From the IMG/VR virus record IMGVR_UViG_3300010938_000951, positions 1 to 64,000 of that record: a DNA stretch of 64,000 bases; one strand, given 5' to 3'. Made by a program: the position numbers and the translations under genes. Positions 8,296 to 58,510 of this stretch are shown here, one piece after another. Every line of letters begins with the position of its first letter. The stretch's first letter is position 1. Below the pieces are notes generated by a model. That model did not search any database. It was not told the origin of the DNA and saw only the letters and a program-made list of their open reading frames with translations.

Positions 8296-8353
8296 AAGCG
8301 GCCTCCCATTCACGGCGTAAAAGTATACGCATAATAGGTGATATATTAAAGAC

Positions 8354-8440: not shown

Positions 8441-8523
8441 GCCGAGATGGTGGAATGGCAGACACAGGGCACTCAAAACGCCCCGCGAACAGCGTGAGGG
8501 TTCAAGTCCCTCTCTCGGCACCA
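8441..8523 (+). tRNA. tRNA-Leu(CAA)
   Basis: GCCGAGA/TCTCGGC acceptor, loop CTCAAAA, long variable arm, encoded CCA. Confidence 0.9.
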
Positions 8524-39583: not shown

Positions 39584-40356
39584 TGGAAAAATGGCACGAC
39601 CCATCTCTTCCATTAGGTAAGAGATGTATAGAATTTGCAAAAAATGAAATGGCTAATGGCGTAGCTGAGGATAAACCTAATTCATTTACCTCACCCCGCA
39701 TTAGAGAGTATTTTAGCATCTGTACTCGATTAATTAATGGCAAAGAAACTCCAATTGGAAAGACTTTTAAAGCTGGAAATTGGTGTTCAGCGGGCGTGTC
39801 TTTTACTTTACATAACTGTTATTTAGAACAAGATGGTTCCCTTCCGCACGGCTACAGATTGGGCGTAATCGAAGTTATGTCTGACATGCAAAAGAAGGGA
39901 ACCTACCGTTCTATTGATCAAGTAAGGAAAGGTCTCTACAAGATTAAAGTAGGCGATCCGGTCTTTTTTGATCGTAGTAATCCAAACAATCCTGCCTCTT
40001 CTTGGTGGCGTCATATTGGATTTGTTTATTCTGTTGAGGCTAATGGTAAATTTATTTGTATTAGCGGTAATAACGGTGGTAGGTGGAGGCTAAGTAATCA
40101 TGATATCAATCAAAAATCTTTACTAGGTTTTGGTGACTATCCTGATGTTAGTGTGGTACAAACAGTTCCAGATGTTGTTGTCGTTAATACTACAGTAGTG
40201 ACAACGCCACCTGCCCCTCCAGAACCTTCTGTTAATATAGATGATTTAGATGACCAGTCATTAACCCCGCCACCACATGATACTGGCAAGGGACTAGGTG
40301 TTAAGAATCCTTTGGTTGCCATTATTGATTTTATCCTTAGTCTATTTAAGAGGTAA
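39583..40356 (+). CDS. CHAP/NlpC-like peptidoglycan hydrolase candidate
   Basis: WCSAGV, GDPVFF, HIGFV, ISGN. Confidence 0.65.
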   Translation: MEKWHDPSLPLGKRCIEFAKNEMANGVAEDKPNSFTSPRIREYFSICTRLINGKETPIGKTFKAGNWCSAGVSFTLHNCYLEQDGSLPHGYRLGVIEVMSDMQKKGTYRSIDQVRKGLYKIKVGDPVFFDRSNPNNPASSWWRHIGFVYSVEANGKFICISGNNGGRWRLSNHDINQKSLLGFGDYPDVSVVQTVPDVVVVNTTVVTTPPAPPEPSVNIDDLDDQSLTPPPHDTGKGLGVKNPLVAIIDFILSLFKR

Positions 40357-40359
40357 ATA

Positions 40360-40566
40360 ATGTGTGCGGTATCTGTGATTTATGATATGTTTGGCAAGCA
40401 GCCTGATGATTGGTATACACTAGACCGCATTGATTTGTTTAAACGCATGGTGGCTGACGCTAAAGTTTTTGATGAAGAATCTGGTCAGCCCGATTGTGAA
40501 GATCCTGAAAAAGCAAAAATTACTGAACGTATAGAAAATCTAGAAAAAGAATTAGAGCAAAAATAA
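40360..40566 (+). CDS. small conserved phage protein
   Basis: MCAVSVIYD...QPDCEDPEK. Confidence 0.55.
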   Translation: MCAVSVIYDMFGKQPDDWYTLDRIDLFKRMVADAKVFDEESGQPDCEDPEKAKITERIENLEKELEQK

Positions 40567-41087
40567 TGTGCAAAGCTATTTACGCTGGTACGTTTGATCC
40601 TATCACTTTCGGTCATATGGATATTATTAAACGTACTATGCAGTTCGCTAGAGAATTAGTGATTGTAGTTGGAATTAATTCAAATAAACAAACTCTTTTT
40701 ACAGAAGAAGAACGAATTAATTTGATTAATAAATCATTTGATTCTGAAATAGATTTTCTAACGGGCACCAATATTAAAGTAGTTTCTTATCAAGGGTTGA
40801 TGGTAAGCTATGCTAAAGAAATTGGTGCATCTATAATGGTTAGAGGTATTAGATCAGTTTCTGATTTTGAATATGAAATCAACTTAGCTAATGTTAATAA
40901 AACCTTAGCACCAGATATAGAGACTGTCTTTTTACCAACTCGTCCTGAACTAGCTGTTGTTTCTTCTTCGATGGTTAAGGAGATTGCTAAGTTTAATAGA
41001 GATATTAAACAGTATGTTCCAGGCTGTGTAGCAGAAGCAATAGTTTCTAAATTTGGTTTTGTCAAGTTTGGGGAGCCGCAAAAATAA
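40566..41087 (+). CDS. coaD: phosphopantetheine adenylyltransferase
   Basis: YAGTFDPITFGHMDII, RGIRSVSDFEYE, VSSSMVKEIA. Confidence 0.95.
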   Translation: MCKAIYAGTFDPITFGHMDIIKRTMQFARELVIVVGINSNKQTLFTEEERINLINKSFDSEIDFLTGTNIKVVSYQGLMVSYAKEIGASIMVRGIRSVSDFEYEINLANVNKTLAPDIETVFLPTRPELAVVSSSMVKEIAKFNRDIKQYVPGCVAEAIVSKFGFVKFGEPQK

Positions 41088-41100
41088 AAATTAGGGCCAC

Positions 41101-41128
41101 TTGACGGTTCAATTTTTTGGTATACAAT
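41101..41128 (+). promoter_or_regulatory. sigma70-like promoter of the tRNA / Y-like RNA array
   Basis: TTGACG-N16-TACAAT. Confidence 0.7.
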
Positions 41129-41202
41129 GTTCGTTATCCAAATCGCGAAATCGAAAAATCTGGGCATAGCCTGATATAGATGATACGATTCCGCATTTTC
41201 AT

Positions 41203-41285
41203 GGGGGAGTAGCTCAGAGAAAGAGCGCAAGGAGTCCGTAAGGAAAACCTTGAGGTCCCAGGTTTAATTCCTGGCTCCCCCACCA
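41203..41285 (+). ncRNA. tRNA-like RNA with anticodon loop replaced by a GNRA hairpin
   Basis: GGGGGAG/CTCCCCC-ACCA; CAAGG[AG-TCC-GTAA-GGA-AAA]CCTTG. Confidence 0.75.
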
Positions 41286-41326
41286 AGCCATATATTAGTA
41301 GCGTCCTAGGTACTAATAGGCTATAT

Positions 41327-41403
41327 GGGACAGTAGCTCAGTGTTAGAGCACCGGCCTTTAACTGCCGGGGGTCGCTGGTTCAACTCCATGCCTGTCCCA
41401 CCA
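41327..41403 (+). tRNA. atypical tRNA with 8-nt anticodon loop CTTTAACT (identity undetermined)
   Basis: GGGACAG/CTGTCCC-ACCA; bulged T stem. Confidence 0.65.
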
Positions 41404-41463
41404 AACCGAATGCAAGTAGGATTACATCGGATTAAAAATAATCTTACTAACCTTTCGTCGGTT
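41404..41463 (+). ncRNA. Y-like scaffold RNA 1 (no cargo)
   Basis: AACCGA/TCGGTT and AGTAGGATTA/TAATCTTACT stems; CCGAATG and GGATTACAT motifs. Confidence 0.7.
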
Positions 41464-41951: not shown

Positions 41952-42059
41952 TGACGAATGCCCGAAAGGGTTTACATTGTATGCGAAACAATCCGATGGA
42001 GTTCGATTCTCCTTTAAGGCTGGTGCCAGGTAAAACAACTCTTTCATTATTAGTCGTCA
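41952..42059 (+). ncRNA. Y-like scaffold RNA 2 (anticodon arm GCG plus T arm)
   Basis: TGACGA/TCGTCA, GAAAGGGTT/AACTCTTTC; ATTGT-ATGCGAA-ACAAT; GGAG-TTCGATT-CTCC. Confidence 0.75.
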
Positions 42060-42061
42060 AT

Positions 42062-42403: not shown

Positions 42404-42536
42404 TCAGCAAATGCCTGTAGGGATTACATTGCATTTGGAGCACGAGGAGAAGGTCCGATTCCTTCCGGCCCGACCATATCGGGACGAGGTGTTATGGCAG
42501 CACGCGTAAAAATAGTCTCTCAATTCTTGTTGCTGA
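42404..42536 (+). ncRNA. Y-like scaffold RNA 4 (circularly permuted Pro-type tRNA)
   Basis: TCAGCAA/TTGCTGA scaffold; order anticodon, T arm, CGGCCCG-ACCA, CGGGACG, D arm. Confidence 0.8.
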
Positions 42537-42892: not shown

Positions 42893-42979
42893 TCTGCGGT
42901 AGCCTAATGGTAAGGCAGGCGGCTGTTAACCGCCCGGTGGTAAAACACTTTCTAGGTTCGAGTCCTAGCTGCAGAGCCA
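42893..42979 (+). tRNA. tRNA-Asn(GTT) with long variable arm
   Basis: loop CTGTTAA; extra arm GGTG-GTAAAA-CACT. Confidence 0.85.
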
Positions 42980-43344: not shown

Positions 43345-43419
43345 TCCGCTCTAGTGTAATTAGCACGACGATCCTTTTTCGGGTCGGGGGTCATGGTTCG
43401 AGTCCATGGGGCGGAGCCA
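43345..43419 (+). tRNA. atypical tRNA (T-rich anticodon loop, identity undetermined)
   Basis: TCCGCTC/GGGCGGA-GCCA; arm CGATC-CTTTTTCG-GGTCG. Confidence 0.65.
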
Positions 43420-43689: not shown

Positions 43690-44118
43690 ATGTTTACATC
43701 TACCGGAATCTTGCATTATGATCCCGGCTTGGGATCTAAACAATATGACCCTTGGTGGGCTCTTCTAATCTGTGACGATGAAGTGTCTAGGTATTATGCC
43801 TGGTTATTAAAGAGAAATGGAGTAGAAGTTTATCCCAATGATAAAGGATTGTGGGGCACACACGTTTCAGTTTTGAAAGGTCAAATCCCAGAAAATACGA
43901 CTAATTGGGGGAAATACGAAGGCTACGAAGTAGAATTCCATTACAATCATCTTGTCCGTTATGATAACGGTAAACATGCTTGGGTGGATGTATATTCCGA
44001 AGATTTATCGTATATACGTCAAGAATTAGGATTCGAGGCAAAGCCCTGGTATCACTTGACAATAGGAAGATTAGTTAGGCCATATGCAGTAGACTTTACA
44101 AAGTATGGCATAACATGA
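43690..44118 (+). CDS. 2H phosphoesterase-like protein
   Basis: two HxS/T motifs: THVSV and YHLTI. Confidence 0.65.
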   Translation: MFTSTGILHYDPGLGSKQYDPWWALLICDDEVSRYYAWLLKRNGVEVYPNDKGLWGTHVSVLKGQIPENTTNWGKYEGYEVEFHYNHLVRYDNGKHAWVDVYSEDLSYIRQELGFEAKPWYHLTIGRLVRPYAVDFTKYGIT

Positions 44119-44525: not shown

Positions 44526-44557
44526 AATGATAATCTTGCGCAAGATTATCAGATAAA

Positions 44558-44702
44558 GACAGAATGCCCCGAAGGAATACATAGAACAGCAATTGAATGA
44601 AAATCAATAGATTGTAGGTGCGAATCCTACCTCTCCCACCAATAATAAGATATATGGGAGGGAAGCTAAATAAAACAAACTTCTTTCAAATCTTTGTCTG
44701 TC
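44558..44702 (+). ncRNA. Y-like scaffold RNA 6 (circularly permuted tRNA-Phe)
   Basis: GACAGA/TCTGTC; ATTGA-ATGAAAA-TCAAT, T arm, CTCTCCC-ACCA, linker, GGGAGGG. Confidence 0.8.
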
Positions 44703-44705
44703 AAT

Positions 44706-45519: not shown

Positions 45520-45520
45520 C

Positions 45521-45660
45521 TGAAACAAATGCTCGCAGAGGATTACATCGCATATCCAGCGGGTTACGTGAGTGCGAATCTCACTCTCAGCTCATTATGC
45601 TGAGATCGTCTAGCAGTCTAGGACACCTAAAAAATAGTCTTCTCAATTCTTGTTGTTTCA
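45521..45660 (+). ncRNA. Y-like scaffold RNA 7 (circularly permuted Gly-type tRNA)
   Basis: TGAAACAA/TTGTTTCA; CGC-ATATCCA-GCG, T arm, TCTCAGC/GCTGAGA, D arm. Confidence 0.8.
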
Positions 45661-45667
45661 CAATTAT

Positions 45668-45863
45668 GCCTCCTATCATGGCTGGAAACTGATAGCGATA
45701 CCACCAGGCGGTCCCAGAGGGATGCAGCAGGGGAAGTACAAGAGTATCAAACAGAAGGGACGCCTTCTAGCCTGCTCACATGGTTGGAAACTGTGACGCG
45801 GTCTTGGTCGCGATAGACCAAGTAGTAAAACCGCAAGCCTGCCCACATGGTCGGAAACTGTGG
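45668..45863 (+). repeat. three copies of a hairpin with conserved core CATGGYYGGAAACTG
   Basis: copies at 45668, 45770 and 45837 with co-varying stems. Confidence 0.75.
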
Positions 45864-50057: not shown

Positions 50058-50606
50058 ATGAAGACTACTATTATCAATTTGTATGGTGGACCTGGTGCAG
50101 GAAAATCCACCTCAGCCTCATATTTGTATTATCTGTTAAAATGTCAACAAGAAAACGTTGAATTAGTTCGTGAATACGTTAAGAATTGGGCATGGGAAAA
50201 CCGACCATTCGGAGTGTATGATGAACTATATTTTCTAGGTAAACAAGTAAGACATGAAAGTATGCTTTTTGGTAAAGTCAAATACATTGTTACTGATGCT
50301 CCGGTGTATATGACAGCCTACTATGCTGATCTTTATTGTAGCAAAGTATTTGCCCAAGGAATTGAGAAAGCTGCTACTGCCTTTTATCAACAAGCTAAAG
50401 ATGATGGACATAATCATGTTCATGTTTATTTAAAACGCTTGCGTCCTTATCAAGCCGAAGGGCGCTATCAATCTGAGCAGGAAGCCTTGTCAGTTGATGA
50501 CGGTGTGCTTAAGATGTTGGCAAGACTGGATGTTCCAGTTATTCATGCCGCTCCTGATGAAGAAGATTTAAAAAGAGTTTTAGAGGATATTCGCAAAGGA
50601 CAATAA
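50058..50606 (+). CDS. NadR-like P-loop kinase/ATPase
   Basis: INLYGGPGAGKST, VREY, IVTD, GRYQ. Confidence 0.8.
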   Translation: MKTTIINLYGGPGAGKSTSASYLYYLLKCQQENVELVREYVKNWAWENRPFGVYDELYFLGKQVRHESMLFGKVKYIVTDAPVYMTAYYADLYCSKVFAQGIEKAATAFYQQAKDDGHNHVHVYLKRLRPYQAEGRYQSEQEALSVDDGVLKMLARLDVPVIHAAPDEEDLKRVLEDIRKGQ

Positions 50607-57830: not shown

Positions 57831-58169
57831 GTGAAAGTTATGAGCTTACCTTGGTCACGAGATATGCAATTAGATCCTGGCACATTTGGAGGGTCTCCAG
57901 CATGTCATGTATTAGTTGATATGATGAACAAAAATGTGATTCCTGTTCAGGAAAAACATCGAGTTCTATCATTCATTAGCGGTACTATTTTGCATTTCAA
58001 GGCCATCTCTGCCATCAAAGAAAGAGGTATAAGGGCACGGGTTATGGTGCTTTTGAAAAATGATCTGTTTTCCAGAATAGATCAAATGCCATATCCAGCT
58101 CATTTCAACTCTTATCTGAAGAACGTAGTAAATCACCACTTCAGGCGATACTTAAAAGAAGTAGTCTAG
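57831..58169 (+). CDS. hypothetical protein
   Basis: ORF whose end overlaps RNase P helix P1. Confidence 0.5.
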   Translation: MKVMSLPWSRDMQLDPGTFGGSPACHVLVDMMNKNVIPVQEKHRVLSFISGTILHFKAISAIKERGIRARVMVLLKNDLFSRIDQMPYPAHFNSYLKNVVNHHFRRYLKEVV

Positions 58170-58488
58170 ACAATCGCTCTGCAAGGAGAGGAAAGTCGGA
58201 GCTACATAGGACAGTCTGCTGGCTAACGGCCAGGCGTAGTAATACGACGGAAAGTGCAACAGAAAATAAACCGCCCGCAAGGGTAAGGGTGAAATGGTGA
58301 GGTAAGAGCTTACCGCATGTTTGGCGACAAATATGGCAAGGCAAACCCCAGATGTAGCAAGCTAAACAGAGAGTGACTTGTCCGGTCAATACTCTCGGGT
58401 TAGTGCTGGAGCCGTCAAGTAATTGTCGGCCAAGATTAATGATTGTCTCGATTTATAGACAGAACTCCGCTTATAGGGCTACTTCTTT
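58155..58488 (+). ncRNA. rnpB: RNase P RNA (bacterial type A)
   Basis: P1 AAGAAGTAGTC/GGCTACTTCTT; GAGGAAAGTCGGAGC, GGAAAGTGCAACAGAAA, GGGTGAAA..GGTAAGAGC, GGCAAACCCC, ACAGAACTCCGCTTA with compensatory P4. Confidence 0.95.
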
Positions 58489-58510
58489 TAAGTTCTTTTA
58501 AGGAATTATT

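Follow-up and report, generated by a model that had tools for sequence, protein, structure and literature searches.

Ro60 has tRNA-like Y RNAs as its partners, and this holds for phages as well (PMC4201824, PMC7824862, PMC12135203). The YrlA type of Y RNA (PMC4201824; RF02553) contains a D arm, a T arm and an acceptor-like stem and is encoded on the strand of Ro60, in phages too; in M. smegmatis it is cut by RNase P and receives a CCA (PMC4201824). Here we describe a tRNA-shaped RNA gene without an anticodon, named X0, which lies at positions 41203-41285 (+) of the viral record IMGVR_UViG_3300010938_000951. The window that we analysed is the first 64 kb (64,000 nt) of this 266,899-bp viral contig from a huge phage, and window coordinates are contig coordinates. 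Judged from its own sequence and from that of its relatives, X0 is very probably a selected tRNA mimic that does not decode, and as mimics of the tRNA body X0 and the YrlA RNAs would be alike. Their topology differs. YrlA is circularly permuted: the Ro60-binding stem, built from its two ends (5' and 3'), stands at the place of the anticodon arm, and its 'acceptor' is closed by a loop. In X0 the order is normal, the 7-bp acceptor stem is open and has an encoded CCA, and the anticodon arm is closed.

Other described RNAs resemble X0 in part. Yrn1 of D. radiodurans (PMC4201824) is unpermuted like X0 and carries at the anticodon arm a stem-loop other than the 7-nt type (5-bp stem, 6-nt loop), but a long Ro60-binding stem replaces its acceptor and it has no CCA-ended acceptor. 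Phage tRNAs that escape nucleases (PMC10264068, PMC12445682, PMC11464382) are array tRNAs with altered anticodon arms, as is X0, but they keep a 7-nt loop with an anticodon and rescue by decoding, which X0 should be unable to do. The tRNA-like domain of transfer-messenger RNA (tmRNA; PMC3985003) is likewise a mimic that is handled by tRNA enzymes without acting as an adaptor. Unlike X0 it has no anticodon arm, and it has G3:U70 and an mRNA module, whereas X0 has G3:C70. Neither ARAGORN nor Rfam reported a tmRNA in the window, and together with the G3:C70 pair this rules out X0 as a tmRNA. The mascRNA and the tRNA-like structures of plant viruses are also mimics that tRNA enzymes such as RNase P or the CCA-adding enzyme process or recognise; they are eukaryotic or viral-genome elements. 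Unlike X0, none of these last three is a free-standing array gene with a GNRA-capped anticodon arm.

Structure of the X0 gene

An earlier note on this DNA, made from the letters alone, had described well-formed acceptor, D and T arms with a CCA and an anticodon loop replaced by an internal loop plus a GNRA hairpin. This description agrees exactly with the sequence, and the parts of the gene are the following:

41203..41285 (+): X0, a full class-I tRNA cloverleaf of 83 nt, of which the last three are the encoded CCA
41203-41209 (+): 5' strand GGGGGAG of the acceptor stem, 7 bp with CTCCCCC at 41275-41281
41212-41226 (+): D arm GCTC-AGAGAAA-GAGC, 4-bp stem, G18 kept, A at position 19
41228..41252 (+): anticodon arm, 5-bp stem CAAGG (41228-41232) / CCTTG (41248-41252)
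41233-41247 (+): replacement of the anticodon loop, 15 nt AG-TCC-GTAA-GGA-AAA against the normal 7 nt
41258-41274 (+): T arm CCAGG-TTTAATT-CCTGG, 5-bp stem
41282 (+): discriminator A, followed by the encoded CCA at 41283-41285, as read from the sequence

The Rfam tRNA model (RF00005) matches X0 with 52.4 bits (gathering score 29, E = 2e-8 for the whole window). The alignment covers model positions 1-71 with 15 nt where 7 are expected, and all four stems pair, with covariation. U8-A9 sits between the acceptor stem and the D stem, the variable loop is AGGTC, and the core tertiary positions U8-A14, G15-C48, G18, T54-A58 and G53-C61 are present. The base at -1 is T (U in the RNA), as in the other tRNAs of the array. 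Beyond what the earlier note had seen, X0 has an A at the D-loop G19 position and U56 instead of C56 in the T loop, and thus lacks the usual G18-G19/psi55-C56 combination; U56 could pair with A19 in the window copy, and most orthologues carry C56.

Within the anticodon arm we find a 2x3 internal loop (AG/AAA), a UCC/GGA mini-helix and a GUAA tetraloop at 41238-41241. X0 contains no 7-nt anticodon loop, no U33 (position 33 is G) and no exposed triplet, and for these reasons it is, as far as its sequence can tell, unable to decode. ARAGORN called 31 other tRNAs in the window and skipped X0. The absence of an anticodon, which the earlier note had claimed, is thereby confirmed. The cloverleaf with the inner hairpin reaches -35.5 kcal/mol compared to -35.9 for the minimum free energy structure (z = -4.0 against shuffles). 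An alternative register, UAAGG:CCUUG, appears in the latter structure; we rejected it since the stem CAACG/CGTTG of L008/L009 fits the cloverleaf register only.

Conservation among orthologous loci

All homologues of X0 come from metagenomic contigs, the eight orthologues considered here are phylogenetically related, and E-values from our custom covariance models are rough. A search of viral contigs for CoaD, the product of the gene upstream of X0, returned 9 loci with the order coaD, a match of ~80 nt to the Rfam tRNA model, and a tRNA array. In these loci ARAGORN skipped the ~80-nt gene. With the custom covariance model R2, X0 scored 112.8 bits and 8 distinct orthologues, at the corresponding place in related huge phages, scored at least 99 bits. 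Among the cultured phages of INPHARED the 83-nt X0 had no match (a 3-kb region matched ordinary tRNAs only), and a metagenome scan with a 19-mer of the loop gave just two unrelated chance matches, in L002 and L003.

In 8/8 orthologues the loop has 15-16 nt and the form NN-(U/A)CC-GNAA-GGA-AA(A/C). Five orthologues carry GUAA as their tetraloop, two GCAA and one GAAA; C-GNAA-G is closed by a Watson-Crick pair throughout, with CC/GG invariant. The inner helix consequently shows no covariation of its own, and its third pair is U-A in five and A.A in three sequences. For the rest of the molecule covariation is clear. In the eight-sequence alignment 98.4% of the cells are in standard pairs and 7 pairs show double changes, distributed over the acceptor stem (3/7), the anticodon stem (1) and the T stem (3/5). 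The acceptor stem occurs as GGGGGAG/CTCCCCC and as GGGAAGG/CCTTCCC, for example, and the outer anticodon stem as CAAGG/CCTTG and CAACG/CGTTG. None of 500 shuffles reached the observed values, and slid partners were paired in 33-57% only. The discriminator is A in 7 orthologues and G in one (L127/L084), and the CCA is encoded in all.

The mean pairwise identity of X0 is 0.90 (minimum 0.78), compared to 0.70 for the syntenic tRNA-Tyr and 0.73 for the syntenic tRNA-Pro of the same 7 phages. By this measure the sequence and structure of X0 are under stronger purifying selection than the adjacent decoding tRNAs. Because X0 is kept more strictly than the real tRNAs next to it, we regard it as a working look-alike and not as a dead gene. 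A decaying pseudogene of a duplicated array tRNA would fit the many irregular genes that tRNA arrays hold, and the L012/L004 copy has indeed lost one acceptor-stem base. This reading is hardly credible, as X0 is more conserved than its functional neighbours, its stems (acceptor, D, anticodon and T) change in a compensatory manner without any pair being broken, the tetraloop varies within GNAA only, and the promoter block upstream is conserved. Unconstrained decay among homologues, named by the earlier note as the outcome that would count against it, is therefore refuted by the kept loop cap, the compensatory changes and the identity above that of the neighbouring tRNAs. The same observations bear out its suggestion of a tRNA-body mimic.

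Distant relatives and the wider class

Distant members of the clade that carries Ro60 (see below) have a gene with the same body, near-identical in its 5' half, and other loops:

L007: UAGGAAUA
L022: CAGUAAG and CGUGUAAG
L063: CAGUAAG
L067: CUAUAAACA
L011: 11-nt loop
L122: 20-nt hairpin

Conservation of the GNRA cap, proposed earlier as a check, thus holds for all eight orthologues and does not extend to these relatives. On the sequences at hand the constant feature is the body plus a non-canonical, mostly closed arm rather than the exact hairpin.

The loops of the relatives also bear on a reading of X0 as a tRNA-Gly with a short removable loop insert, in which the bases 34-36 (UCC or ACC) are paired by the GGA of the insert. 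Six loop variants do read NCC at the right distance, three of these have U33, and ARAGORN called no tRNA-Gly in the window. Yet U33 is missing from the window copy, loops of relatives lack NCC (UAGGAAUA, CAGUAAG, UUCG-capped and others) and the acceptor stem is without the bacterial Gly identity set (C2:G71, U73). There is no bulge-helix-bulge, the unpaired AG and AAA face each other, 8 extra nt are too few for a group I intron, and no intron family matched. To our knowledge no bacterial machinery excises such an 8-nt insert. We rejected an intron-bearing tRNA-Gly, an extremely unlikely explanation, because the relatives lack a consistent anticodon and the geometry is wrong.

For a wider view of non-decoding genes of this kind we scanned for the D-arm pattern GCUC-AGNGAAA-GAGC and obtained 81 distinct tRNA or tRNA-like genes, decoding and non-decoding, on ~80 viral contigs and a few contigs of metagenome-assembled genomes (MAGs). 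Since ordinary decoders (Val, Thr, Ala, Arg) are among them, this D arm does not stand in the way of translation. In about half the anticodon arm is other than 17 nt long, and many of these have stable caps:

UUCG cap: L018, L109
GCAA cap: L042, L041, L059, L038, L105
GUAA cap: L064, L075
bare 3-bp UCC-GUAA-GGA hairpin: L033
long perfect hairpins: L044, L105, L052

The same scan of genome contigs gave 13 matches. Around half were chance matches in coding sequence and the remainder were tRNAs in MAG contigs resembling phage arrays, including the anticodon-less L032 and L033. As capped or long arms recur across many array genes, the conversion of an anticodon arm into a capped rod appears from these sequences to have happened repeatedly in phage arrays. 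On two unrelated contigs a GOLLD RNA lies ~1 kb or less from a capped-arm tRNA-like gene (L033, 6248-6627 (-), 217 bits; L075, 9117-9601 (+), 195 bits).

Position in the array and putative promoters

Genes in the window are short, densely packed and nearly all on the + strand. X0 heads an array of ~28 tRNA genes at 41.2-53.1 kb, all with encoded CCA. Its description as the first gene of the array holds for this cluster, from which a lone tRNA-Leu at 8441 stands apart far upstream. The order upstream of X0 is a Nudix fusion, Ro60/Rsr, a 558-aa protein without matches in family scans, a TIGR02452 protein, a gene with a weak CHAP match and coaD:

31936-33123 (+): nucleoside deoxyribosyltransferase-like/Nudix fusion, near Ro60
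33529..35115 (+): phage Ro60/Rsr homologue (TROVE + vWA; Pfam PF05731, PF25045), true start near 33529
36920-37780 (+): macro/PARG-like TIGR02452 protein, near Ro60
39583-40356: weak CHAP gene, match below threshold
40566..41087 (+): coaD, pantetheine-phosphate adenylyltransferase (TIGR01510, 185.8 bits, cutoff 103.3)
41101..41128 (+): sigma-70-like promoter TTGACG-16-TACAAT, 10/12 consensus positions, a consensus match only
41158..41180 (+): block CTGGGCATAGCC-TGATATA of the extended -10-like type, ~25 nt before the 5' end of X0
41286..41326 (+): spacer of 41 nt that separates X0 from the following gene, a hairpin as read from sequence
41327..41403 (+): second array gene, a tRNA with an 8-nt anticodon loop CTTTAACT (ARAGORN, Rfam)

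The CTGGGCATAGCC-TGATATA block is kept in 8/9 orthologous loci and the TTGAC...TAnAnT block is found in 5/9. We infer that the conserved TGATATA block acts as a promoter. GGCATA-N3-TGATATA also precedes the tRNA-Leu (8339) and a tRNA-Asp (44116), and a related motif stands before Ro60 (33347). We rejected the idea that a common promoter type ties Ro60 specifically to X0, since the motif precedes several tRNA groups. Throughout the window the TGATATA extended -10-like motif occurs 11 times on the + strand and twice on the - strand, often preceded by GGCATA-N3; those at 8339, 33347, 41172, 44116, 47672 and 51471 (+) are located ahead of tRNA groups and Ro60.

The place of X0 behind a putative promoter could also mean that it is a processing or stability element of the polycistronic array transcript, a 'dummy' first tRNA that recruits the RNase P of host or phage, defines the array's 5' end or protects the pre-tRNAs downstream from 5'-end-dependent decay. 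In 9/9 loci of the clade X0 comes first after the promoter, the RNase P determinants are intact (7-bp acceptor stem, T arm, -1 U, CCA), and the phage encodes an RNase P RNA of its own. This RNA, at 58158-58489 (+) downstream of the tRNA array, is of the bacterial class A and full-length (279.9 bits). We nevertheless consider a processing role improbable. A scaffold needed for its shape only should drift at least as much as real tRNAs, while X0 shows an identity of 0.90 against 0.70-0.73; any ordinary tRNA would do for this purpose; and related genes are situated inside the arrays, not at the front, in L018, L022 and L023.

The coaD gene is directly upstream of X0 in every orthologous locus and is a neighbour by synteny only. 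As a 'cytidylyltransferase-like' gene it had been a candidate for a minimal synthetase-like partner, which we rejected as it is a genuine CoaD. The earlier note had offered a non-ribosomal aminoacyl donor as its second option. On such a reading an anticodon-independent synthetase would charge X0 for an aminoacyl-tRNA-dependent transferase, and the ribosome would not accept it. An intact acceptor end with CCA and the nearby gene with the weak, sub-threshold CHAP match would suit such a role. Staphylococci offer a precedent in cell-wall tRNA-Gly species whose D and T loops are altered, and identity sets independent of the anticodon exist in G3:U70 (Ala), a long variable arm (Ser, Leu) and G-1 (His). 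X0 has none of these three, its discriminator varies between A and G in orthologues, one lineage is short of an acceptor base, and the scanned genes, which make up part of the window, yielded neither a synthetase nor a transferase of the Fem/MprF type. The sequence therefore disfavours the donor, and we think it quite improbable.

Ro60 as a candidate partner

The phage Ro60 lies a few kb upstream of X0 and is co-conserved with it in the clade; its NCBIfam Rsr match falls below the cutoff of that model. In all related loci whose contig reaches it, Ro60 is 68-86% identical and occupies the same relative position. X0 is on the strand of Ro60 and starts 6.1 kb past its stop codon, an arrangement that is conserved in the clade.

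We surveyed 66 Ro60-bearing viral loci. In L139 a tRNA-like gene with a 27-nt GUAA-capped arm is found ~250 nt upstream of a Ro60 with 26% identity, and in L134 an 88-nt anticodon-less tRNA-like gene with a 24-nt loop begins 44 nt after a Ro60 with 41% identity. A dozen Ro60 genes of 21-24% identity precede conserved insert-bearing tRNA-likes of 125-145 nt, 0.2-4 kb downstream, which include:

L146: 9577-9705
L154: 11369-11495
L151: 14933-15064
L167: 4561-4708
L161: 2804-2940
L145: 11431-11575
L170: 11241-11374
L155: 4858-4986

In this family the acceptor stem, the D arm and the T arm are normal and covary strongly. A structured insert of 55-70 nt, with the motifs GUUCC...GGUG and GAGUUACUUCA, separates the D arm from a short anticodon-like hairpin.

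Based on these observations we propose the following mechanism. A conserved promoter of its own would drive X0, which would thus be the first RNA made from the array. RNase P would cut it, and it would mature as tRNAs do; we propose a tRNA-like maturation because the -1 U, the 7-bp acceptor, the T arm, the CCA and the core tertiary pairs are intact. It would be kept out of decoding, having no anticodon and an arm that is ~4-5 stacked layers too long. The sealed and lengthened anticodon arm forms a closed rod, and the tRNA body would be offered to a protein that recognises its shape. The sequence conservation of X0 exceeds that of decoders, which suggests a conserved partner making specific contacts with it. 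As this partner we favour the phage's own Ro60-centred module for RNA surveillance and repair, because the clade conserves Ro60 together with X0 and anticodon-less tRNA-likes adjoin distant Ro60 genes of phages. X0 would then correspond, in unpermuted form, to the tRNA-like domain that bacterial Y RNAs (YrlA) contain. Taken as a whole, a functional non-decoding tRNA-shaped RNA with the Ro60 module as its partner is a plausible reading that falls somewhat short of probable.

Several points weigh against it. The Rfam YrlA model (RF02553) gives no match to X0 at E <= 5, and both the motif GNCGAAN0-1G and the open Ro-binding stem of the YrlA type are absent from the X0 sequence. The distance of 6.1 kb between Ro60 and X0 exceeds the 4 kb that are typical of Y RNAs. 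Phage Ro60 genes are generally located in tRNA-rich regions, with ordinary tRNAs adjoining in L128 and L138, so that proximity alone is weak evidence. Most capped-arm tRNA-likes from the D-arm scan had no Ro60 in the surrounding few kb, and when the 98 D-arm loci were searched by tblastn with nine diverse Ro60 proteins from phages, every Ro60 that came up was one known before. In distant orthologues the GNRA hairpin is swapped for loops of 7 to 20 nt, and the cap itself is therefore dispensable. Due to the kinship of the eight orthologues their counts are not independent events. Finally, other Y-like candidates in the array could, going by their sequence, fill the role of Ro60 partner.

Two candidates were rejected in this context. 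X0 is not a Y RNA of the YrlA type according to Rfam, motif and topology; the sole RF02553 match (24.4 bits) runs across two tandem tRNA-Asn genes, and near-matches to GNCGAAN0-1G are located in the trailer motifs of the array (see below) rather than in X0. The 200-nt region upstream of Ro60 was considered as a Y RNA on account of GCCGAAUG and turned out to be a TTGACG-N17-TACAAT promoter plus leader. A further tRNA-like gene lies ~300 nt upstream of a distant Ro60 (L175, 2100-2172). It has D, anticodon and T arms and no paired acceptor, and its 6-nt loop CGAAAU is reminiscent of D. radiodurans Yrn1, to which its likeness is stronger than that of X0.

Instead of the phage's Ro60, the partner could be an enzyme of the host. 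Bacterial immunity frequently targets tRNAs, among other sites at the anticodon stem, the tail and the variable loop, and phage tRNAs counter this (PMC10264068, PMC12445682, PMC12851939, PMC13056530). X0 might accordingly act, as decoy or inhibitor, on an immune nuclease or toxin of the host whose recognition site is the tRNA body or the 3' tail: made at high output from the first array slot, without a cleavage site in an anticodon loop and not consumed by translation, it would bind effectors of the acceptor end, the elbow or the anticodon stem. The slot right behind a conserved promoter suggests high output, closed GNRA or UUCG arms recur in many unrelated arrays regardless of detectable Ro60, and the array is placed among genes for RNA repair, NAD or ADP-ribose (TIGR02452, the Nudix fusion, a weak match to a 2H phosphoesterase). 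Against this, the documented phage rescue tRNAs all restore decoding and do not titrate (PMC12445682, PMC11464382), and stoichiometric titration is a weak answer to a multiple-turnover nuclease. Such a decoy has no documented precedent, and high conservation across phages with probably different hosts fits a phage-encoded partner at least equally well. We regard a decoy as rather unlikely and retain the Ro60 module as the favoured partner.

Other elements of the array

By their family assignments the genes around Ro60 and the array share NAD, ADP-ribose or RNA-repair themes. Two further protein matches lie within the array, a weak 2H phosphoesterase match at 43690-44118 (+) and an AAA_28 kinase-like protein at 50058-50606 (+).

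The second array gene is, from its sequence, likewise non-canonical, because its orthologues carry A-rich loops of 7 to 10 nt. The 41-nt hairpin in the spacer before it is not kept in orthologous loci, and L114 and L127 have a RAAUGC...UUACAU trailer at this place. Another 8-nt anticodon loop, CTTTTTCG, is present in the tRNA at 43345-43419 (+), and an over-long tRNA-Asn of 87 nt with a long variable arm is located at 42893-42979 (+). Related arrays contain tRNA matches of 101-119 nt with large inserts (L114, 16222-16340; L127, 17555-17655).

A trailer motif, RAAUGC-[2-3-bp capped hairpin]-(A/U)UUACAU, usually follows 3-8 nt past the CCA of a tRNA, with copies at 41408, 41956, 42193, 42409, 43095, 44296, 44562, 45527, 45951 and 53143 (+). 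A loose version of the pattern has 11 + strand matches in the window (one of them weak), and each clade member has 3-10 copies in its array. It was also found in L113, L114, L117, L121, L124-L127 and L135, and in L114 and L127 it stands directly after X0. The 5' part of the motif resembles the Ro60-contact motif GNCGAAN0-1G of YrlA. It is probably what the earlier note had called a Y-like, anticodon-only element.

At 45520-45650 (+) three elements come after the trailer motif: first a T arm (GTGAG-TGCGAAT-CTCAC), then a 7-bp hairpin with a 7-nt loop, and last a D arm. The hairpin occupies the acceptor position, which results in a permuted, YrlA-like layout, and the Rfam YrlA model gives no match here. 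Weaker YrlA-like candidates are located at 44556-44705, 41952-42061 and 42404-42480 (+). A 27-nt unit, AGCCTGCNCACATGGTNGGAAACTGTG, forms three direct repeats in a non-coding stretch of the array, at 45667-45693, 45769-45795 and 45836-45862 (+).

Implications

Standard tRNA finders skip genes such as X0 or assign meaningless anticodons to them, which makes them invisible in current phage annotations. Our literature search found no description of anticodon-less tRNA genes in phages or of this type of RNA. Anticodon-capped tRNAs may form an undescribed and widespread class of phage non-coding RNAs, unpermuted mimics carried in tRNA arrays and serving as Y-RNA-like cofactors of phage Ro60 or as inhibitors of tRNA-targeting host effectors, with X0 as a highly constrained founding example; in this general form the proposal is possible but on the unlikely side.

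The tRNA arrays of phages are currently viewed as codon supplements or as replacements for tRNAs cleaved by the host. X0 appears to fulfil all requirements of a tRNA save decoding and is conserved beyond the decoders, which would suggest that tRNA-shaped RNAs have a further task during infection. If a host effector is its target, X0 would be the first RNA decoy of tRNA-targeting bacterial immunity. If Ro60 is its partner, X0 would offer a simple handle on the purpose of the tRNA-like module of Y RNAs.

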